A stretch of 64,000 nucleotides of DNA from Oopsacas minuta (taxonomy: Eukaryota > Animalia > Porifera). The stretch's first letter is position 1. Each line of letters opens with the position of its first letter. Made by a program: the position numbers and the translations under genes. Location of the stretch: contig JAKMXF010000266.1 of NCBI GenBank assembly GCA_024704765.1, positions 496,001 to 560,000 of the forward strand, written 5' to 3'. The notes beneath the pieces were generated by a model. It worked only from the letters and a program-made list of their open reading frames with translations. It was not told the DNA's origin and made no database searches. This document shows, piece by piece, positions 6,693 to 53,682 of the stretch.

Positions 6693-7814
6693 CTCTTTAA
6701 TGTATTGCTTTGTATGTTTTTTAATCGTGTATCTTTCTATTTCAATACAGCCCCTTAAATAGTATGTCTAGCTTATCAATATCAACCCAGCAGAGCTAAA
6801 GATAGTTTGATTGTTTCTATTCACAATTCAACGAGAATTATATCATTTTAATACGCATTGTTAATGTTAGAATTGATTTAATACAGTAGAACTTCGTTTG
6901 ACGCGTTTTGACGCAAGTTTTCTCGATTCTTTGCTAGTAACTCTCTAGTACTTGAGATTTTTAATTTTAGCGTCCCTGGTTATGCGTCAGGCGCTAGAAA
7001 ATCACTCCCAAGACTTGCGAAGAAAGATTTATCGCCACCCTCTAGAGTCTAGAAGGATATTTTGATTAAATATATGAATATGCCTCATTTCACTACACAA
7101 CAAATAATTCCCAACATCATTTATCGTATCTTCAAAATTGGGTTCTTATTCAGAGCAATGCAACATATATTATCGCGATATGTACTATGAATAAGTTTAC
7201 ATATAAGACTGATTTGAGAATATGAAACCTTGCGTAACCGGTTACATCAATATAGCTGTTGAAAGCTTCTATGAGAATAACTGATTTCTCTGCTGTAGCT
7301 TCTAGGAACTAACCTGCCGCGTGAAATGGGAATACCCGTTTTCACAACATGACATTAACTCTTCCTCAAGACTGGGGAGAATTAATTAAGGACCCACGAC
7401 TATGAGGGCCACGTTTTTGATAAGGGCTGAATTACAGTGAGCTCACATACATACTGCATAATTGTTGCATTCATTCATTAGCTCTCTAAACACACACCTT
7501 CAGGTCATAGGGCACTGGACAACACAGCAAGAATGTTACTACTATTCTCTCAATGAAGACTCCAAAAACACATTTTCGATGAGTTATTTGAGTATGATGA
7601 AATTAGATAAAACACCAAAATATCCACTGTAGGAAGCAAATTTCCAAATTTCTGGTTGCCCACGTGATGCCTATACATAATGCTATGATAATATCAAATA
7701 CTAACATGTTTATGTTTAATCAACTTCACAGATACTACACATACATTAAACTAAATAATAATATATAGAATTTGTTAAGATACTCAAATAATGACTGTTC
7801 TTCTCTTTGAATAG

Positions 7815-8003
7815 TTAAGACTTTGAGCCGTAGACTTTACGTCCAACGAATCCTAGAATAATACAAGTAGTAATGAATCCAATAACGAGGATAATAACCA
7901 ATGCTATTCCATCTAATGCCCCGAATGTATAAGCATGTACTGGTGCGAATAAACTGCACAGAAGCAGTGTGAAGAAACAAACTAGCTCTGTTGATGTAGA
8001 CAT
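7815..8003 (-). CDS. SMIM30: Small integral membrane protein 30-like microprotein (62 aa, signal peptide + TM)
   Basis: MSTSTELVCFFTLLLCSLFAPVHA|YTFGALDGIALVIILVIGFITTCIILGFVGRK matches the SMIM30 pattern (signal peptide, D-x-IAL, C-x-x-LG-x-x-x-RK). Second Met of the 7815..8021 ORF used as start. Confidence 0.75.
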   Translation of the reverse strand: MSTSTELVCFFTLLLCSLFAPVHAYTFGALDGIALVIILVIGFITTCIILGFVGRKVYGSKS

Positions 8004-8764
8004 ATTCCTTATCTCTTTCAATTCTCAATTTACAATCTTTCCCGATGAAATAAGATATATATAAATCTAATGTAATTTGATTGAGTAATATTAACCAAGG
8101 TAGTTTATGATATAGGACTAATGGTGAATGAAACCATGTGTGCAACTTGAGAAGTCTTATGGCAGAAATTACTGCATTGTGATTACACCATGCTGGTAAG
8201 GTTATATATCTGAATTTGTATAGACGCGGGATTAATTCTAAAATTAGCACATAAAGTAGAGGTGTATGCAATATTACTTAAGATGATGAGGCTATTTATA
8301 AATTTATTTCTTTAACATATTTGATGCCATTTATGGATAAATACATTAACTTTAATCTTATAAACAACATATTTGGCTAGGTGGTATGGTATAGGGACGT
8401 TATAAGAACATTCATTACTACCAAGGCGGTTCTTATAACCGACCACTGTATTCCCTTTCACCTTGTATACAGTCGGATCACTGTACTAAACCACTACTAG
8501 CTTTTCTAGCTTTTCCAGTTTTTCCAGGACACATTCATTTATTTTGTGTTTTCAAGAGTACTATCGATAACGTGCATCTATGTTCCGAGTTTTATGTAAT
8601 AACATTTTTTCCGCTTTTCTGAGGAAATAGCGGACATTATTAAACGCGTAGCATATATGTATACATTTATATATCTGCTTTACGTGATTATCACATAACT
8701 GGTTGGGAGAGGGTATATTCATAGGAATGCGTTATAAATTGTAGCATGCACTATAAAGATATAA

Positions 8765-42060: not shown

Positions 42061-43299
42061 ATGTCCGATTCTGTGGATATAAATCAAACGCATAGCAGCG
42101 TATGCAATAATGTAAACTCAGTACAGAGTGAACGCGAATCAGTTGAAAGTGTATTAAGTTGCTTCAGTGAAATGGAGGATGTTGATTTTGAAGAGGTTTA
42201 TAACCGATTGAGGTTAGATATACACGAAACGCTGGATGAAATCGTAGAGGAAAAGATGCAAGCGTTACATAAACGTATACAAGAGTTAGAACAAGAAAAT
42301 CAAGTTCTTCTAGAATGCAAAAACACAAATGAACAAACTGTCCAGTCGTTATCAATTAGTAACAGCAAGTTAAAGTTCGAGGTATTAACGTTACAAGAAG
42401 TTCTGAGCAAACAGGTAAATGGAGAAAGCGATAATAACCACATTTCAGCAAATAATACTCGTACAGCTCGAGACATCAAACAATTGAAGATCAGGAGTAA
42501 AAGTACAAATTGGAACAATGACGAGAACAACCCGATAGAAAATGACAATTGCTTTACACAAGATAATACCAAAATTGGAAACAAAACAAAGATTTTACTG
42601 GAAAGAAGCAAAATACTAAAACAAAATAGAACCAATTCATTTTCTGGCTTCTCTACATCAGAAACATCATCATTAGCAGACATGCCAGGTATTGTCAACA
42701 AGCATAAAATACTAGGTCGAACAGGGACAATACGAGGCTTCCAGAATACAGTAAAGAAGAAAGTAAGTTCATACAAACTGATCAATGATTCCTCTTTTCT
42801 ATCCTCACAAGTGCAGAGAATTGTAGAATCTGAATTAGAAAATGAGGAAGATAATTTCCCAGGGAAGCTAGTCGTGTATACAACCAGTTCTATCTTGGTT
42901 CGGGAAATATTTGATAATTGTAAGTTAGTGTTAGAAATTCTTACAAAGCATAAAGTTCAATTCGAGGAGAGAGACTTATTCATAAATCCAGGCTATGAAT
43001 GCGAATTGAAAGAACGTTTTCAAGACGGACAATGCAGTCTCCCTATCTTGTTTCTACGGGGTTATGTACTAGGAGACTGCAATAAAATGGTGCAATTGGA
43101 TGAAGAAGGAGAATTAATAGAACTACTCAAGGAATTTAAAAATGAATCTATAACAGAATGTCTACAGTGTAGAGGTAAGAGATTCACACAGTGCCTCTGG
43201 TGTCAGGGCAGTAAGAAAGGATTATTGAGTCTTAAGTGTAGTGTTTGTAACAAGAATGGTCTTCAACCTTGTTTTGAATGCAACAAACAAGAGAAGTAA
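42061..43299 (+). CDS. Glutaredoxin domain-containing cysteine-rich protein (GRXCR-like) with N-terminal coiled coil, intronless
   Basis: GKLVVYTTS...CKLVLEIL...FEERDLF...ELKER...LPILF..GYVLG followed by four CxxC motifs (CLQC, CLWC, CSVC, CFEC). Confidence 0.85.
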   Translation: MSDSVDINQTHSSVCNNVNSVQSERESVESVLSCFSEMEDVDFEEVYNRLRLDIHETLDEIVEEKMQALHKRIQELEQENQVLLECKNTNEQTVQSLSISNSKLKFEVLTLQEVLSKQVNGESDNNHISANNTRTARDIKQLKIRSKSTNWNNDENNPIENDNCFTQDNTKIGNKTKILLERSKILKQNRTNSFSGFSTSETSSLADMPGIVNKHKILGRTGTIRGFQNTVKKKVSSYKLINDSSFLSSQVQRIVESELENEEDNFPGKLVVYTTSSILVREIFDNCKLVLEILTKHKVQFEERDLFINPGYECELKERFQDGQCSLPILFLRGYVLGDCNKMVQLDEEGELIELLKEFKNESITECLQCRGKRFTQCLWCQGSKKGLLSLKCSVCNKNGLQPCFECNKQEK

Positions 43300-43587: not shown

Positions 43588-46500
43588 TCATACAACTAAC
43601 AATGAACCTGTACAACATGGACATGGCATATGTATACCATGATAATCCTGTATATTAGGTTCAAACACATCAATCCTATCTAAAAGCGTCATAATCTCTT
43701 GCTTTGTATCTTCTGCAGATAATCTAGTCAGAGAGGTATCTATATGCTGTACAGGGTATTTCTCAAGAACCTCTGATATTTCTGTCTCAGGGCTTTGGTA
43801 GTTTTCATCGTGTATTGGTTTACTAAGAGATAAATGCTGTACCAACTGTCTGAGTCTAGATATATCTTCTTGCATGCTACGTTTTTCGACCTGAAGTTGA
43901 TCTAACAAAACCTGTTTCTGTGAATACTGTATTTGTAGAGCTCTCCTCTGAGATTGGTATAGAGATACATACTCTCCTATAGTATCAGTCTCTCCTTCTA
44001 GTAGTGTAAGTAACCTCTCTTTGTGCTGTAGTCTATCATCTAGATCTGCTTTCTGTCGCATAACTTGTACAAACCTTACCTGCAAGCTATCAAATGCTGT
44101 CTGTAGGGCTTGAGTAGCAGGGATTGGAGGGGAGTATGCTCTCTGTTCAAGCAGGATAGGTTTGTCTTCTCCACTTATTTGTATGTCTGTTTCACTTAGA
44201 GATCGAGTTAAGTTGTGTTTCAATACTCTAGGAGGATTTAATTGGGTTTGTATAGAATCTTGCTGTAATTCTCCTAGTTTATTATCAAGTTGATCTCTCT
44301 CTGTTAAGAGACGATTTATATCTTGTTGTAAATCGTACTTTTCAACCTCTATTCTCTCTAAATGTGTTCCTAACTCCTTAGTTTCCTGTGCTAGTTCGCT
44401 GCTACGTAGTCTCTCCTGTCTGAGAGCCTCAGTCATAGATCTCTGATCAGCTAACTGTTCCTGAGAATCAAACAGGTCTTGTTCTGTTTTGCTAAGAGTT
44501 ACTCGTGTGTTCTCTAAGATCTCAGTCAGTCGTACTCGCTCTCTCTCCAGAGAGACTAGTTTATCGTGTACCTAGTGAAGACAATGCAATAACATTGGTA
44601 ATATACACCGGTTCATGCTAGTCTTAGAATAAGTGATCTCTATCTGAACTTATACATGTGTCAGTTAATCTCGAAAGAGAACAAATTGACATCCTTAGAC
44701 TTGAATAAATTTCAAAGTAATCAATTATTCTATAAATTTCTCAACTTTTGTTATGGACCTAAAGTGCAGCTTTGTATGGTGAATAGTTCGCAAAATAGCG
44801 AAATCCGCGTATTAGCAAGGAAAATTCTTACAAAATACGATTTGCTATAGGCGGTTTCCACTGTAACTCATACTGTTTGATTCGAAACGAATTTTGGATC
44901 AGTGGAAGGTTTCACGTCGTTTTGTGGTCACTCGAATATGATCGGGAATATTGTATCCCTAGTAACACAGGAATGTAGCAACATTCCATTCTCAAATTTT
45001 ATCCTAACACTTCAAGTGACCCCTTGGCCGCTAGGTAAGCTGAGTATAGTTATGCAAATATCATCCCTCTAAATGATCTTTAAACACGATTTTACTAGTG
45101 TTAGCTCCGCAGTCCATCTATTTTCTTCAAATTTCTTACAGAGTACCCTACCAACATTCCAGGGTTCTAAGGATTATATGTATTAATTCTTCATTGAAAT
45201 ACGTATTACACAACTTAAGTTTCATCTTGCCTCCCTTCAGGGGTCAAGATCCTCTCTGATCACAATGGAACAATTAAATGCATTATTCAATTATACCAAC
45301 AGGAAGAACCAGCTGCTTCATGATATACGTATGTCATCAAATCTTGAAAGAAAACTAGAATATTTATTAACTATTCAACTCAAATACTTAGAAACTTGCT
45401 TCCTATATGCAATTTATAGGAGGAAATAGTGAAATATTAACTTAACAATATATCTACCTTTTCCATGCTATTATCTCTCCTCTCCTCTCCAACTATCCGT
45501 CCTGCTTCTAAACTAGCTCTCACAGCTTGTAACTCCTGTTCCTTCTCTCTCACTCTCTTCCTGTGTTCCTCTCCTTCTCTTACTCTTCTCTCTGTCTCTG
45601 CTTGCAGCAGTCTACACTGCTCCTGCAGCTGTGAATACTGCTGTCTTGCATGTTCTGTATTCTGATCCATTCTCTCTTTTAGATTATGTATGTTAACCTC
45701 TGACCTAAATATTAATATTATGTCGTAAGTATGAGGTTTGTAATGCATGTTTAATCTTGCTCGAGCCACGCAACAAGTATTCAACAATAAGTATATTAAT
45801 CTGTTGATAATGAATATTAAAATAACAATACAATGGAAATATTTTGCACTTTTTCGAAATGATATTTAGTAGAATATATTTGAGAAAAGATAATAGGTTA
45901 CCATGATACACACTATATATGTCTGTAATCTGAACAGTACTGTTTCAATTGCAAAATAATTAGATATTTTGAACATTTTCCAAAAGTTATAAAATTTGGG
46001 ATCTGTTCGGGTTAGCGAGGTTCGGATGAGTGAGGGTCTACTCACTCTACTGTATGCTACTTACATACATTAACGTATTCTCAATACCTCCTTTGTATCT
46101 GGAATTTAATCATATTTAGTAATTATAATGGGAAATATTCAATTCTAGAAATATAATATCTAGAATATGAGTGATTGAATATATTTGAATAAATTCATTA
46201 AAAGACAAATATTTGCTGTTATAGTCACGTCGTAACGACATTGCAGAATTCCTTCCAGAGTTACTCCTCCTCACTAACTGCATAACAAATGCTGTAAATG
46301 AGCTTACCAGATAATAGCCATTCCCATAATGCCTTCTCATATAGTAAAATATTTTAGAAAATCAGCGTGCATTAATTAGCTTAGTCGTAATTACGGAATT
46401 AGTTATCACAGTAAATTATATTGTATACGAATAATAAATATTCTAAGGATAATTCAAGTAGAATTATGGGACAATGACTGACTAATGTACATAATACATC

Positions 46501-49500
46501 CTCTGACAAACTCAGTTCGTATTAAGTACATCTACATAATTAATTTATAGAGAACATAAAATTACAATAAAGAGGGTGAAGGAAGTTTGAGTTTATTTGT
46601 TAGACATGTAAGTATGAGCTACTGCTGTAAGAGTAGAACTAATAAGGTGAGTGTCATTAGATTTGATTTGGAAGTGTTGAGTAAGACTTGGGTTTTTCCG
46701 ATTAGTGAAGGCTATGTCTAGCATAGAGTCAGTTGGTGTCCACTCCCGTATATCTTTTATGCAAATATCCGGAGTAAGACGAGACAAATCGCTTGATTTT
46801 ACTAATACGACTGATTCAGAGCTTATAACCAGATAGGCATCTTTCTTATGACCCGTAGTCCCACTAGTGCTTACACTGAATATAATAGCTCCGCTTAGAA
46901 AGTTGGATTGGATAGTCTCTGTACACAGCTTCATGATATTCTCAACAGATTCGTGTTTGAGCTCTTCGAGTGTTTTCGCTATCTTAGTTTCTGCTAACTT
47001 GGTAACTGGTACTCCTCTGTGTATGAAGTCTCTCGGACTACTGTTGTAGCTTGTAGCAGTGTTCTGTATAGAATTGAGTGTGTGTAGACATGCGGCTACA
47101 ACACAAGCAGTATCTTCATTCTGAGGTATAGACCCTTGTACAGCAGGTAGCCATCTTTCTGCGAATAGAGTTTGTTCAGTCTTGGAGTTAAGGTATACTT
47201 GAAACATTTCTTTATTGAACTTAGCATCAGATGGTGGGCTTATTATCAAAATGTGACAGGCGGTTACCTTCTGTTCAGCAAGGCTAAGGCTTTTTGATAG
47301 TCTATTATAATAATTTGCAAAAGTTTTACTCTTCTTTGGATTAAGTAAATGTTTACTAGCCAACTTTTTGGGTTTGACACTTATCCTGGGACCGACTAGC
47401 AAATGGGACTGTACGAATTCGTATCTATTATCGAAGAATTTTGAGTAGCGATTAATCATATCTTGTACAGGGATGTTTATATTGATAACATCTTTGAAGA
47501 ATCCGTTTTGAACTGAAGCGAATTGTATGTAGAATAGAACGTAGTTGTCTTTGATAGAAAGATAGTCGTTCTGAGATTGAATAGCGATTGGTAGCGAATA
47601 TTCTGAGTGATCCTCTATATCCGCTAATCCATCGATTTCCAAAGCATCGTCACTCGTTTGGAATTGGTTATATGAACTTTTATTTGATTTTATTGACACT
47701 TTTTTAACTGAGTTCGATTCTGATTTTGTAAAGTCTCTTGTTAATATTGACATTTCTATTGAGATAGTGAGAATGGCGATAATATCTGAAGTTATATATT
47801 ATATTGCTTATAGAATTATTCATATTTCCACTCATTTATATGTGATTTTGAGAATTTGCATATATCTGTTAGAAAAATAGGGGTTTCGGTGTTATTTGCA
47901 CAGCTGAATTGCGGGGTAATATGCTCCCAAAATATTTAATATATTAAATAATGCAAACAACATAGATGTAGGTTGTAGGTGCATTAGTAACATGAATGTA
48001 ATTATAATTTGGTGAAGATAAGTAAATAACTAAGATCATAGATCGTAGCTGGGGGGTAACTAGTGATCCTGGAGAGAGGAAGAAGGGGTGATTATTTGCC
48101 TCTATTGTGGGATTATGATAGAATTTGAATGGGGAAGCGTCAAACGACGGGAAGCAATTGTCTCTAGTCTATCTCATTGCTATTTTAAATCATAATGAAT
48201 ATTTCATCAAAATTGTGCTCATCAATAGCTGATAAAGAAATTTCATCAATATTATACAAATCAGAATACTACTTGCCAACCTTCCAAGGATTATCCAGGG
48301 ATTTGATCTATGATTCAGAGGGAAGATCGCTATTCCAGGGAAAAAGTTATAAGGTTGATAAGTATGAGTGCGTATGGCTAAAGTGAACCTAGATGATTCA
48401 AACATCAAGGACGTACACACAACGAGATAAGAAAAACAATGATTGTACTGGCGAACAATTTTAGCTTTTCAAATGGTGTGTAATTCTATAAGCACATTTA
48501 TCATCATTTTAAGATGAGAATTTGTATACAGTTCTATGTCAGGAAAATGCTCCAGGGGCCGATTATTGTGCCAAGATCAATTTCTAGCCTTACTCTTCAC
48601 GATATTAGTTAATTTGACTAAGTTAAATCATCAAATTACCTTATGCAGTATCTACGTCGTAGTAGACTGAAGAAATGTGACTAGCGAATCACGTAACAGC
48701 CATTACACACCAATCAAACAATGCCATACTGCTACAATATTATACCTCACATATAAATAGATAGAATTTAATATAAATTGACAACAAATATTTCAAACAA
48801 CAACCATCACAAAAGATGACTTCAGTTTATCCAAAAAGCAACGTAAAATCGAAACACATAAAAAAACAGGCAGCAAAACCAAAAGGGAAATATAACAAAT
48901 TCGACTCCAGTAGTGATGATTTTGAACTTATAGGTCTCGAGGATATAGAAGATGCAGAATATTCGCTACCAATCGCTATTCAATCTCAGAACGACTATCT
49001 TTCTATCAAAGACAACTACGTTCTATTCTACATACAATTCGCTTCAGTTCAAAACGGATTCTTCAAAGATGTTATCAATATAAACATCCCTGTACAAGAT
49101 ATGATTAATCGCTACTCAAAATTCTTCGATAATAGATACGAATTCGAGCAATCCCATTTGCTAGTCGGTCCCAGGATAGGTGTCAACCAACATAAACTGA
49201 CCAGTGGATACTCGTTAAGTCATAAGAAAGATAAAAGAAGAGGCCATCTCAAGGATAGACTATCAAAAAGCCTTAGCCTTGCTGAACAGAAGGTAACCGC
49301 CTGCCACATTTTGATAATAAGCCCACCATCTGATGCTAAGTTCAATAAAGAAATGTTTCAAGTATACCTTAACTCCAAGACTGAACAAACTCTATTCGCA
49401 GAAAGATGGTTACCTGCTGTACAAGGGTCTATACCTCAGAATGAAGATACTGCTTGTGTTGTAGCCGCATGTCTACACACACTCAATTCTATACAGAACA

Positions 49501-52500
49501 CTGCTACAAGCTACAACAGTAGTCCGAGAGACTTCATACATAGAGGAGTACCAGTTACCAAGTTAGCAGAAACTAAGATAGCGAAAACACTCGAAGAGCT
49601 CAAACACGAATCTGTTGAGAATATCATGAAGCTGTGTACAGAGACTATCCAATCCAACTTTCTAAGCGGAGCTATTATATTCAGTGTAAGCACTAGTGGG
49701 AATACGGGTCATAAGAAAGATGCCTATCTGGTTATAAGCTCTGAATCAGTCGTATTAGTAAAATCAAGCGATTTGTCTCGTCTTACTCCGGATATTTGCA
49801 TAAAAGATATACGGAAGTGGACACCAACTGACTCTATGCTAGACATAGCCTTCACTAATCGGAAAAACCCAAGTCTTACTCAACACTTCCAAATCAAATC
49901 TAATGACACTCACCTTATTAGTTCTACTCTTACAGCAGTAGCTCATACTTACATGTCTAACAAATAAACCCAAACTTCCTTTGGACAGTTTTTTAAGACA
50001 TTTTGTACAATTGTGTGTATGCTAATCATGTACATTTAGTGTAAAGATTGATGTTATGTAGTTTGATTAAACCTTTCTAAACAATAAAATTAGAAATTTC
50101 TAACCATCAATCTAGGTTACAATATACAATCTTCAGCAAACCCATTATTGACTTCATGAATAGCGGGAGGGCAGCTAGCAATCTAGATTGCTGATTAGAA
50201 ACTACCTTCGAATTATAGCTCTATGTCGTATTGGAGAGTAAATGTAAATACTCATATAAGCCGTAAATAGTAGATAATATTAACAGTCGTAGCTTGATTA
50301 TACACGACAAGCCTACATACACTAACTACTTTGCTGCTTATTATTGTTCAGGGTTGTGATTAATAATAATTTCAATCAATATTAAAATGATAGATGGTTA
50401 TGAGAGAATATCTTAAAAAGATAACAATCATATTTATGGATTAAAGAAAATAGGAAACACAGATTGAATTTTTGTATTTCAATAAATAGTATCTTTGAAA
50501 ATCCGATTGAGTGAACTTGTAGATTATTGATTGAATTGGATTGAATTTGGATTATTTGGGAACCATTCAAAGAGTCTATCAATAACTTTAATCAATAGAA
50601 AAGGGATAAATACTAATAATTAACGGATAATATATATATCACAGAGAATTGCTCAATCAAGGTATTGTTATGCTAACGTCAGGTAAAATACTGTGAATCA
50701 GGGTCTATGTAGTTTGTTTTTGCTTTCTTATTGATTGGAATTTTCCTTCGTATTAGTTGATTATGCCTGCTAATTGTGGTTCTGTTTTCTTGCTATTTTA
50801 CTGTGGAAAGAGCTTTATTTCGCATTTCGTAGTTGTTGATTTGTTGTTTCAAAGGTATAATTGGGTGAGATCATCCACCAGTAACCTGATGTCCTGGTTT
50901 CGAATCCCAATCAGGCCTTACGTTTTTCGACCGTATTTACCTGAAATCTGTCTAAGATGGATAGAATACCTGCTTTAAGCAATTCCCTGTGATTAAATCA
51001 CTCAGCTATATATACAATACTCCGAGTTATTAAATGGTCGATATATAATCGATGATTTTATCGATTATCATTTGGATTGGCAACTCTCCATTTTCCGGAA
51101 TACCAAATACACATTCGTATACTTGTTTAGTCAAAACATAATCATGCTATACATATACAGAGCCCCGAAAAAATTCGCGAGAAATATTAAATAGTAATAA
51201 ATTAGAGTTTAGAGTACCATAATTCAATGAATAAGCACCGGAGAGTAACTCAAGAAAAATACAGTATTAATATCGGATAAATTAATGAACATATATTACC
51301 TGTCCTTTTCTTGTATTGATTTCTCTAAATTTACAGTCATCTTATCGAGTTGAGATCTCAGCATATTATTCTCTTCATTAACAGCCAAAACCTTGTCTTC
51401 TGCGGCTTTTCTCGCCTTCTCATTCTTTCCCTCGACAGGATAAGATCTATCTACTAGAATAGCATCTTCTAACTGTCTGGAGAGAGTTAAGCACTCTGCT
51501 TGACTGCTAGTTAAGTTGTGATTAGCTGATTCCAATCTTAGAGGTAAATATAACAATAAAACGATAAATGCCTTTGACATTAGGTAACTTATAACTCCAG
51601 GGGAAATAAAATATGTTGAAATAACGGATGCCCTTAATACCTTATTTAATGTTACCCAATCTCGAAAAAACCACAGCAATTTCAAATGGTTCATTTATCA
51701 AATAATCCATTATATTATGTATATTATTAACCATCCGAAGTTTAAGGAAGCATAATCTTACAAATTTGGTATCTCGATAGAGTTTTATCTTCTCACAGGG
51801 GTTAGAGATATCGGTTATTAACTGAATAAACTCTAAACTGTAAACTGTAAATACTAATTTTATGATAACATACAACAATCCATAAAACGGTTGTACAATT
51901 TTTAAGCAGGAAATTGGATAATTCCTTCGTATAGTCAGCTGCGTTCAATATATCACTAAAATAAGCAAACTAAAAACCTTACCAAAAAAGCTAATAACAT
52001 AAACTGATAAGATGTTAATACTTCATAAACATGGGTATAGTTGCAGAAAAGAAATAATACTAGTATGTTCCAGGTTATCATTTCTAACCGCGTTGGTAAA
52101 GGTGCTCAGGTGATTTTATCAAAAAATGCAAACAGTATGTATAATCACCCAAATATCCTTTTCTGTGCAATTACTGAGTAAAATCTCTATTACATATGAG
52201 ACTAATAGTAAAATATTTTGAAATTTAGAAGATCAAGAATTTTAGCGAAAACTGAAAACCCCAACTATTACGTTTGGGAATAAAATAGTTTTTGGCTTGT
52301 CAAGAAATATTAAACAATAGGATAAATAAATAAATAAACCTTCGGGGGTATATAGTAAATTCCCGTTATAACGAAGTGATTCTTACCCCCTATAACTTGA
52401 AAGTAATGGCTTTTACTCAGAATTCAGCTTAAACGAAATGAAACCGGTAATTACTAGAGTTTACTGTAGTATATTATTTATTTATGCTAGTGACACAAAC

Positions 52501-53682
52501 CTGGCTTGAAATTCTAACTTCTCCTGTTGACTCAGTTCGAATTGTGTTCTTAGTTGTATAATATCTTGTTCCTGTTTATTCTTAGTATCAAAGAGTTCTC
52601 TCTCAGAATTTATCAGCCTATTGGTGTCAACATCTGAAGATGCTTTCTTTTCTGTATAGAGTACATACAAATATAGATATGGAATTATATGAAATATAGA
52701 TTTTGTTCATGTGGCGCTTCTTATCGTAATATGACCATAGAATCACATGCTCACATGTACACGATATCACTAGAGAATTACGTCATCTAGATGTTAGTTA
52801 CCTAATGCTTCTCTCAGCTGGCTGTCTGACAATTGTTTATTAATTTTTAATTGAAGTAATTCACGCTCTAATTGATTAGTTTTAGTCTGCTCGCTTCTCA
52901 ATAGAGTCTGTAGCTCCATCTTATCCTCCGCAAGCACTGTAAGTGCGTTCTGTTGTGCTTGTGAGTTGGTAGAGGTAGGAGAAGGCCTCAAAGGAGGAGA
53001 TGATGAGACAGGGAGTACTGTTGAGTACTGTGCATGAGTCCTATAGAAATGAGTATTTACTTGGTACACCAAAAAAGTATTAAAAGTGAATAATTCTGGC
53101 AATTTCTAACCAGAACCTAAGCATAAATTAGTCAATGAATTAATTACTGAAAATTCATTGAACTCATGATTTACGTCAATAATTTGGTTGCGAGGACATT
53201 TATCAATCTATATTACTGGTTAGAAACCCTTTAGTACATAATTGATGTCGAAATATACGTCACCAACGAAATTGAGACTTCGACTAGTTGAAATCTAGCG
53301 AGTCCTCAAATTCGTCGGTAACATATACACTGTTCATTTCACCCATGTAAATCTATTGTTTAGGATAATACGAATAGCCAACACGAATAAGGATTCATTG
53401 TAACACTAACATATTTCTAGTGAAGTCAGTTGTAGTAGGAGAAATATTTCTGTTAGGTTCTACAGACATGTGTTGCAAGCTGCGTGATATACTTGACAAT
53501 TGTTGGGTAGATTTAGATCTGATATCAGAATATTTATGTGTATGTGTAACCTCAGGTAAAACATGGTGAGATTGAGTTACTCTCTGCTGAGGCAGACCCT
53601 CTTCTTTTTTCTCACGTTTATATTCCTTTAATTTCTTTTTCGCAAAGCTATGATAATTGCTGGGGGGATTTAATGATTTCAT
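43588..53682 (-). CDS. GOLGA2: Golgin subfamily A member 2 (GM130); exons ~53411-53682, 52802-53040, 52501-52651, 51300-51536, 45458-45704, 43588-44571
   Basis: N-terminal AKKKLKEY, long coiled coil, GETDTIGEYVSLYQSQR, C-terminal CPCCTGSLLVV; junction phases match. Start codon uncertain. Confidence 0.88.
46593..47753 (-). CDS. Talin-head-like FERM (F1-F2-F3) protein, copy A, no rod domain, intronless
   Basis: RLSKSLSLAEQKV resembles talin F1 WLDHGRTLREQGV; QGSIPQNEDTAC resembles F2 NGSHPVSFDKAC; SGAIIFSV...LVISSESV...IKDIREW...LDIAF...LISSTL resembles the F3 PTB-like lobe. Confidence 0.7.
   Translation of the reverse strand: MSILTRDFTKSESNSVKKVSIKSNKSSYNQFQTSDDALEIDGLADIEDHSEYSLPIAIQSQNDYLSIKDNYVLFYIQFASVQNGFFKDVININIPVQDMINRYSKFFDNRYEFVQSHLLVGPRISVKPKKLASKHLLNPKKSKTFANYYNRLSKSLSLAEQKVTACHILIISPPSDAKFNKEMFQVYLNSKTEQTLFAERWLPAVQGSIPQNEDTACVVAACLHTLNSIQNTATSYNSSPRDFIHRGVPVTKLAETKIAKTLEELKHESVENIMKLCTETIQSNFLSGAIIFSVSTSGTTGHKKDAYLVISSESVVLVKSSDLSRLTPDICIKDIREWTPTDSMLDIAFTNRKNPSLTQHFQIKSNDTHLISSTLTAVAHTYMSNK
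48816..49967 (+). CDS. Talin-head-like FERM protein, copy B, divergently oriented paralog of copy A
   Basis: Near-identical to copy A from YSLPIAIQ onward, except a ~30-aa basic patch and a few substitutions. Confidence 0.7.
   Translation: MTSVYPKSNVKSKHIKKQAAKPKGKYNKFDSSSDDFELIGLEDIEDAEYSLPIAIQSQNDYLSIKDNYVLFYIQFASVQNGFFKDVININIPVQDMINRYSKFFDNRYEFEQSHLLVGPRIGVNQHKLTSGYSLSHKKDKRRGHLKDRLSKSLSLAEQKVTACHILIISPPSDAKFNKEMFQVYLNSKTEQTLFAERWLPAVQGSIPQNEDTACVVAACLHTLNSIQNTATSYNSSPRDFIHRGVPVTKLAETKIAKTLEELKHESVENIMKLCTETIQSNFLSGAIIFSVSTSGNTGHKKDAYLVISSESVVLVKSSDLSRLTPDICIKDIRKWTPTDSMLDIAFTNRKNPSLTQHFQIKSNDTHLISSTLTAVAHTYMSNK
50848..50918 (+). other. Degenerate tRNA-like / SINE-head sequence
   Basis: B-box-like GGTTTCGAATCCC preceded by an anticodon-arm-like CATCCACCAGTAACCTGATG; acceptor stem and A box poorly preserved. 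Confidence 0.3.

Follow-up and report, generated by a model that had tools for sequence, protein, structure and literature searches.

Integrins are activated by two FERM proteins, talin and kindlin, and FERM domains elsewhere pair with other receptor tails (FRMD8 with iRhoms, SNX17 with NPxY cargo, IDOL with LDLR). FRMD8 consists of a FERM domain only, so a stand-alone FERM architecture is not new as such, and the FERM domains of FRMD8, KRIT1, SNX17/27/31 and IDOL are not known to carry an F1 insert of the talin type. In the talin head a basic F1 insert and an F0 domain have been described, the latter contributing to integrin activation (PMC2845276), and kindlins have been proposed to stem from a talin-head duplicate (PMC4325847). 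TLNRD1 is a stand-alone homologue of the talin rod domains R7R8 that has acquired a function of its own (PMC8287531). Here we describe two neighbouring genes, A1 and A2, whose products resemble a talin head that ends before the rod; they lie in a window of 64,000 nucleotides of AT-rich eukaryotic DNA from the glass sponge Oopsacas minuta (Hexactinellida; assembly GCA_024704765.1, contig JAKMXF010000266.1, positions 496,001 to 560,000 of the forward strand). They belong to a real, undescribed, lineage-restricted and selectively maintained family of stand-alone FERM proteins with specifically talin-like F2 and F3 lobes.

A sequence-only reading of the window had proposed two intronless open reading frames (ORFs) of about 385 amino acids (aa), each with a low-complexity basic and acidic N-terminus followed by F1, F2 and F3 and ending right after F3. 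The two ORFs were found exactly where they had been placed, and the rest of that layout was recovered as well, the lobe order being seen in the second of two AlphaFold2 (AF2) models. Confidence along the models is given as the predicted local distance difference test (pLDDT). The features are as follows.

48816-49967, plus strand: gene copy A1, a type A paralog; its intronless ORF of 383 aa, a separate NCBI gene, codes for a talin-head-like FERM protein that stands alone
48816-48989, plus strand: disordered N-terminal tail of A1, residues 1-58, Lys-rich and then acidic, with pLDDT 24-32 in the first model
48999-49331, plus strand: F1 lobe, residues 62-172, a ubiquitin-like beta-grasp split by a loop
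49176-49304, plus strand: basic disordered F1 insert loop, residues 121-163, about 43 residues, after the third F1 strand
49332-49661, plus strand: F2 lobe, residues 173-282, helical and continuous, about 110 residues
49662-49964, plus strand: F3 lobe, residues 283-383, a PH/PTB-like sandwich plus a C-terminal helix that runs to about residue 381
49818-49820, plus strand: codon (TGG) of the invariant Trp335, aligned with talin W359
46593-47753, minus strand: gene copy A2, an intronless ORF of 386 aa that duplicates A1 in inverted orientation; a separate NCBI gene
47265-47390, minus strand: A2 counterpart of the F1 insert loop
46740-46742, minus strand: A2 counterpart of Trp335, Trp338

Homologues of the two proteins form a small family. 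A word-indexed search of 5.8 billion proteins returned 14 members of 348-402 aa at 47-59% identity, none of them with a Pfam domain, among which were the Oopsacas 'hypothetical protein' P0007 and two Vazella pourtalesii transcripts labelled complete ORFs, the rest being from ENA assemblies. When 1.84 billion representatives were searched exhaustively with an HMMER profile, only 4 proteins came back, including P0016 and P0017 of a distant clade (328-338 aa, about 20% identity), to which a second search added P0024 and P0025. Two old paralog types, A and B, occur in at least six glass-sponge assemblies, and the distant clade occurs in other animals, in a lineage represented by at least five related assemblies. 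Each distant-clade gene, too, consists of one ORF, and these genes have common neighbours, the block in L001, L002 and L009 (assemblies ERZ20067936, ERZ25072730 and ERZ25766962) comprising DDX56, two unknown genes and the FERM-like gene, followed, in L002 and L009, by an axonemal dynein light chain gene and CEP295NL. The best named matches of the distant-clade DDX56 are cnidarian, at 56% identity, and no named sponge is among its 120 listed matches.

Neither window protein has a match in Pfam or NCBIfam at E<=1. None of the Pfam FERM models (FERM_N/RA_2, FERM_M, FERM_C/IRS/KRIT1_FRMD8_FERM_C) rose above its gathering score, and other members gave sub-threshold matches only (IRS-type PTB in 5 of 20, best E 0.013; FERM_M at E 0.1 in the fragment P0015). 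The sequence-only reading had not recognised the architecture as a named family, which holds in that no named family matches, although FERM-only proteins such as FRMD8 already exist. We found no description of such a family in the literature searched, the Oopsacas genome paper and its supplements mention neither talin, kindlin, fermitin nor FERM, and the family's proteins are currently labelled as hypothetical or not at all. The novel part is a rod-less and F0-less talin-like family undetected by Pfam and NCBIfam, with lobe-specific concerted evolution.

Across the members, a low-complexity tail of 15-80 residues precedes F1, and the otherwise variable tails of both paralog types keep two short motifs, Y-N-x-F and the acidic S-x-[DE]-D-[FL]-x-L. 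The F1 loop has a net charge of +8 over A1 residues 119-160 and of +3 to +10 in all members, with pLDDT below 50 at model residues 72-92. Its site is approximately that of the talin F1 insert, as the structure search VIA pairs model residues 62-63 with talin 130-131, or with 171 where the entry skips the insert; the large basic F1 insert, a trait of the talin head, is thus present in the family. Type B loops contain a conserved R-T-R-S-L-S stretch, which we take to resemble a basophilic kinase site. The best-conserved motif of the family, ERWLPAVQG-x-P, lies in F2, where an R-D-F-I motif pairs with talin K263-D-F-L in a hidden Markov model alignment to talin 224-310. In all members the protein ends in the same way, with the stop codon 2 residues past the F3 helix.

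Compared with the talin head (talin-1/2; PDB 3g9w, 1mk7, 6vgu, 6u4k), the family is without F0, the linker and the rod. The rod with its vinculin- and actin-binding sites is absent, so that actin and vinculin coupling and rod-mediated autoinhibition belong to talin, whereas the family has no rod for either. Its members are proteins of about 330-400 aa encoded by intronless genes in few lineages, with a disordered charged tail in place of F0. TLNRD1 could be viewed as a conceptual mirror image, being derived from the rod whereas the present family is head-like, and there is no sequence relationship between the two.

The predicted fold is that of a FERM domain. An initial AF2 model, for which 15 untrimmed sequences were used, disordered tail included (pLDDT 44.8), gave FERM proteins as all of its top 50 Foldseek matches at a template modelling score of about 0.23, and it was replaced by a second model (ma0910ed1b5f2) from 20 sequences, with the distant clade added and the disordered tail trimmed, which reached a pLDDT of 75.9 and a predicted template modelling score of 0.78. 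With this model, all 50 listed Foldseek matches in the PDB were FERM (best talin2, E 8.8e-12), as were all listed VIA matches in the PDB and the 10 listed matches among ESM Atlas shapes, which were FERM clusters. In a search of 48,161 representative chains made without Foldseek, whole-model matches were FERM and single lobes matched ubiquitin-like and PH/PTB domains. The lobe order of the FERM superfamily, with a ubiquitin-like F1, an acyl-CoA-binding-like helical bundle as F2 and a PH/PTB-like F3 with a C-terminal helix, is reproduced in the model, and another fold, which the sequence-only reading had named as what would speak against it, did not emerge among the listed structure matches, which are all FERM.

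Within this superfamily, F2-F3 is specifically closest to talin, in structure and in sequence. Talin F2-F3 was the top structural match in two independent searches (VIA and the 48,161-chain search), and when profile A3, built from 20 sequences, was run against PDB sequences at E<=10, all 22 matches were talin (best E 6.4e-4), colinear over talin 224-370. An F3-only profile matched talin in 23 of 23 cases, all in F3 (best E 0.0034), and a profile of the distant clade alone did so in 14 of 14 (best E 0.027); FRMD8, KRIT1, SNX17, IDOL, myosin and kindlin were not found among the matches of these three profiles. The glass-sponge-only profile A1 and the F1-only profile A5 had no match among PDB sequences. 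The sequence and structure registers agree, model residues 133-329 corresponding to talin 209-400 and model W281 to W359. The resemblance to the talin head that had been noticed by eye was thus recovered by both routes, with talin at the top of two structure searches and the sole family among the PDB profile matches. A single-sequence search of PDB sequences returned only DUSP21 (E 0.019), a match judged spurious.

The residue kept most strictly lies in F3. With talin numbering checked through L325 in chain 1mk7_B, W335 (W338 in A2) is the only invariant F3 Trp, found in 20 of 20 sequences, and it aligns with talin W359; the distant clade also retains the W351 equivalent. In talin, the W359A substitution abolishes the interaction with the NPxY site that lies membrane-distal in integrin beta tails (PMC4516797).

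Given these features, we consider it slightly more probable than the opposite that A1 and A2 are functional, transcribed paralogs of a very diverged stand-alone talin-head homologue, which would work as a membrane-docked modulator of receptor tails with integrin beta as the leading candidate partner; the uncertainty is mostly about the identity of that partner. In such a mechanism, the basic F1 loop and the Lys-rich tail would hold the protein at the inner face of the membrane, and the F3 beta5/alpha1 groove around W335 would clamp a short cytoplasmic-tail motif of a transmembrane receptor. The integrins of Oopsacas comprise 5 alpha and 3 beta subunits (PMC10280926), and the leading candidate ligand would be an NPxY-type motif of one of the three beta subunits. 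Having no rod, the protein could not couple a receptor to actin and would therefore act as a modulator, either as an activator in the manner of the talin head or by competing with full-length talin or kindlin for that tail. If this is true, a head-only regulator has been derived from talin more than once, here in one of the earliest-branching animal groups, and the family would be a talin head that nature has reduced to a minimum, without F0 and rod, in which the features needed for receptor binding could be told apart from those needed for activation. Glass sponges are syncytial animals that have no basement membrane and are missing several core signalling genes (PMC10280926).

Nevertheless, several observations weigh against this interpretation. 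The profile E-values are marginal (6e-4 to 0.03), come from the PDB only and would not be significant at billion-sequence scale; the glass-sponge-only profile retrieved no talin in the exhaustive search of 1.84 billion proteins; and the identity to talin is just 13-16%. The lead of talin in Z-score (about 1.3-2 units) is partly due to the existence of talin chains that consist of F2-F3 only, and language-model features of the ESM Atlas, which serve at the level of a lead only, put clusters of the FRMD8/KRIT1/SNX17 type first, at 0.90. Among functional residues, the family has K, E, S, R or G at the site of talin R358, and L325 lies opposite an insert or gap. Of the patch that orients F2 at the membrane (K256, K272, K274, R277), the last three residues have S, L and T opposite them in the family consensus, and an invariant Lys matches talin K278 only. 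The K316-K324 ladder of F3 keeps its basic character just in part, the window proteins having H-K-K, and F0 is absent, the disordered tail standing in its place. These losses of talin residues are soft negatives, because the alignment is uncertain at 15% identity.

The same observations might be read as pointing to a FERM adaptor for other cargo or receptor tails, unrelated to integrins, in which the talin likeness would reflect descent or convergence of the F2-F3 scaffold, and we regard this as the strongest competitor, though a distinctly less probable one. The ESM Atlas ranking and the missing lipid-binding lysines, R358, L325 and F0 would all suit such an adaptor, as would the scores of IDOL, myosin-VII/X and KRIT1, which trail talin by just 1.3-3 Z units; furthermore, PTB-type F3 grooves bind varied tails, and the PDB matches themselves include an APP-talin chimera and a PIPKI-gamma complex. 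However, the PDB profile matches are to talin only and never to FRMD8, KRIT1, SNX17, IDOL or myosin, the equivalent of W359 is invariant, and an hhalign comparison with the FERM domain of a neighbouring myosin gave nothing. The FERM domains of FRMD8/iTAP, KRIT1, SNX17/27/31 and IDOL also differ from the family in having no sequence-level match to it and structural scores below talin, and the RING, PX and ankyrin domains that accompany FERM in such adaptors are not present in the family.

A kindlin relative, which would have lost F0 and the PH insert or would be a PH-less descendant of the talin-head duplicate ancestral to kindlins, seems improbable. Kindlins (fermitins) carry F0 and a PH domain within F2, whereas the family has neither, its F2 is continuous, and there is no profile match to kindlin.

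The two ORFs are real, independent genes and not chance ORFs. Type A versus type B dN/dS is 0.2-0.4 in the folded lobes, and start and stop positions are conserved in 14 full-length homologues from at least seven assemblies; the family is under purifying selection, and the A/B duplication is older than at least six sampled glass-sponge taxa. The Vazella transcripts carry complete ORFs. For Oopsacas, four public runs of one study contain the locus, three of which look like DNA because of their flat depth and Nextera adapters. In the fourth, X4, which has TruSeq adapters, 782 contig pieces are nearly confined to the two ORFs, with a summed depth of 1e4-1e5, as against 17 in the spacer between the genes and 0-49 in the flanks, and the contigs end about 30-110 nt from the ORF ends. 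Since the libraries named in the genome paper are RNA-seq, DNA-seq and Nextera mate-pair, X4 most likely corresponds to the RNA-seq one, and abundant transcription of both genes is probable. To be set against this is that X4 is not on record as RNA and that contigs cannot gauge the level of expression. Transcription of both window genes, a point that the sequence-only reading had proposed to check, is therefore likely.

That the ORFs are instead exons of a longer gene (e.g. GOLGA2), the other objection foreseen by the sequence-only reading, or decaying retrocopies, as might be suggested by their lack of introns and by the position of the pair between coiled-coil exons possibly of one GOLGA2-like gene, with A2 on that strand, is already largely refuted and hardly probable at all, given the ATG and stop codons kept across the homologues, the low dN/dS, an A/B split that predates the species, a gene that runs antisense to GOLGA2 in other species, the complete Vazella ORFs, the separate NCBI genes and X4 contigs that end near the ORFs.

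Two records of run X4 show, at window position 48806 (10 nt before the A1 ATG), about 14-16 unmatched GC-rich letters just upstream, which could represent a very short 5' untranslated region with non-templated or leader sequence, or noise.

Beyond their talin likeness, the genes of the family bear traces of concerted evolution on two levels, between types A and B and between A1 and A2. The corresponding features of the window are given below.

49347-49646, plus strand: gene-conversion tract of A1 common with the type B paralog P0007, residues 178-277, 94% nucleotide identity
46579-47305 and 49255-49981: inverted-repeat arm pair 1, 727 nt, 99% identity, reaching 14 nt beyond the stop codons
47324-47605 and 48955-49236: inverted-repeat arm pair 2, 90% identity
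47754-48815: spacer of 1062 bp between the divergent start codons, GC content 0.33

Within each of six species, types A and B are 83-100% identical over alignment columns 210-300 (residues about 185-275, in F2) and about 20-50% identical outside this segment, which itself is 57-80% identical between species. In a tree of F1 and F3, types A and B each form a clade of their own (100/100), and the species branch in the same order within both, whereas in a tree of the F2 core the sequences of one species cluster together and A is not split from B in any bootstrap tree. The Oopsacas A/B synonymous distance (dS) is likewise 0.20 over residues 158-277 versus 1.2-1.6 elsewhere. From these trees and distances, gene conversion homogenises F2 between the unlinked A and B paralogs in every species that has both, the paralog spacing of about 150 kb having been measured in two of the six species (about 149 kb on the same contig in Oopsacas, about 163 kb in ERZ25071281). 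An assembly artefact behind the A/B identity in F2 was rejected, as the pattern recurs in six separate assemblies and the Oopsacas tract is 94% and not 100% identical. This is a clean natural case of domain-specific concerted evolution, in which F2 is homogenised in six species while F1 and F3 keep their old divergence.

A1 and A2, which are arranged head-to-head, have 89% protein identity. Their nucleotide homology (BLASTN) starts about 75 nt into the coding sequence and stops 14 nt past the stop codon, and the two sides of the spacer have no common repeat, the only two inverted-repeat pairs reported being both within the coding sequences; both promoters presumably lie in the 1062-bp spacer. 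Between the two copies, dS is 0.00-0.05 over residues 47-118 and 158-383 and rises in two islands, to 0.70 in the N-terminal tail (residues 1-46) and to 0.66 in the F1 loop (residues 119-157), with dN/dS of 0.57-0.67 there. The inverted duplication is old, since dS is about 0.7 in these unconverted islands; conversion keeps the folded parts of A1 and A2 alike, and the two disordered charged segments retain the divergence.

A bolder possibility, which we hold to be unlikely on present evidence, is that the family branched off the talin head independently and anciently, without the rod, whether as a second invention of the 'kindlin-like' sort or as a surviving PH-less relative of the talin-head duplicate that gave rise to kindlins, acting as a co-regulator of integrins or other receptors in the syncytial glass sponges. 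The unconverted F1 loop and tail would then give each paralog its own membrane or partner specificity, and F2 would be held identical by conversion.

The homogenised tract also affects data processing. The Vazella proteins P0002 (type A) and P0011 (type B) were assembled by Trinity as isoforms i2 and i1 of one gene (EukProt TRINITY_DN265_c0_g1), most likely because of their identical F2 segments, and such merging can mislead analyses of expression or isoforms in the family.

In runs X1 and X2, DNA contigs depart from the window at 49007 and continue as the type B paralog (H-N-D-Y-L-F-T), and one DNA contig skips 271 nt between 49039 and 49311. These departures look like assembly-graph cross-links between homogenised paralogs and not like variants.

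The genomic surroundings of the pair comprise the following features.

42061-43299, plus strand: GRXCR1/2-like gene, an intronless ORF of 412 aa; Glutaredoxin at E 3.4e-6, GRXCR1/2 C-terminal domain at 23.4 bits (cut-off 26)
43588-45748, minus strand: GOLGA2 (GM130)-like gene, annotated with 424 aa; Pfam GOLGA2L5 at E 5.9e-23 on 43588-44436
51296-53682, minus strand: coiled-coil exons beyond the pair, at NCBI a separate gene of 300 aa

The 424-aa GOLGA2L5 gene and the 300-aa coiled-coil gene may be one GM130-like gene split by annotation, and a basic K-K-K-L-K-E-Y stretch in the ORF 53395-53682 presumably recalls the GM130 N-terminus. It is plausible that the pair is nested in a 5.6-kb intron of GOLGA2, the alternative being that GOLGA2 is a plain neighbour; nesting is no firmer than plausible because NCBI ends the GOLGA2-like gene at 45748 and annotates the further exons separately. 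A GRXCR-like gene stands beside GOLGA2 in two other glass-sponge assemblies as well. Vertebrate relatives of GRXCR1/2 act in stereocilia.

The two paralog types occupy distinct positions. Type A, with the short tail (the window pair, P0002-P0006 and P0008), adjoins the GRXCR-like gene and the last GOLGA2-like exon and runs antisense to the GOLGA2-like gene in two other assemblies; it is present as a single copy in ERZ25072740, as a tandem pair about 16 kb apart in ERZ25071281 and as an inverted pair in Oopsacas. Type B, with the longer 'MATSP' tail (P0007 and P0009-P0014), lies between the RNase P p29 and peptidase S28 genes, near a gene for a MyTH4-FERM myosin. An origin of the family from this myosin was considered and rejected (hhalign probability 0.1%, a weak test with a single-sequence template). 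Located two genes upstream of type B, the myosin is a single ORF of 2131 aa in ERZ25071281 (L007, 2030-8425, plus strand), and the same place in Oopsacas is taken by a 756-aa Myosin_head gene (L003, 637-2959, plus strand) together with a separate gene of 491 aa (7244-8719, plus strand).

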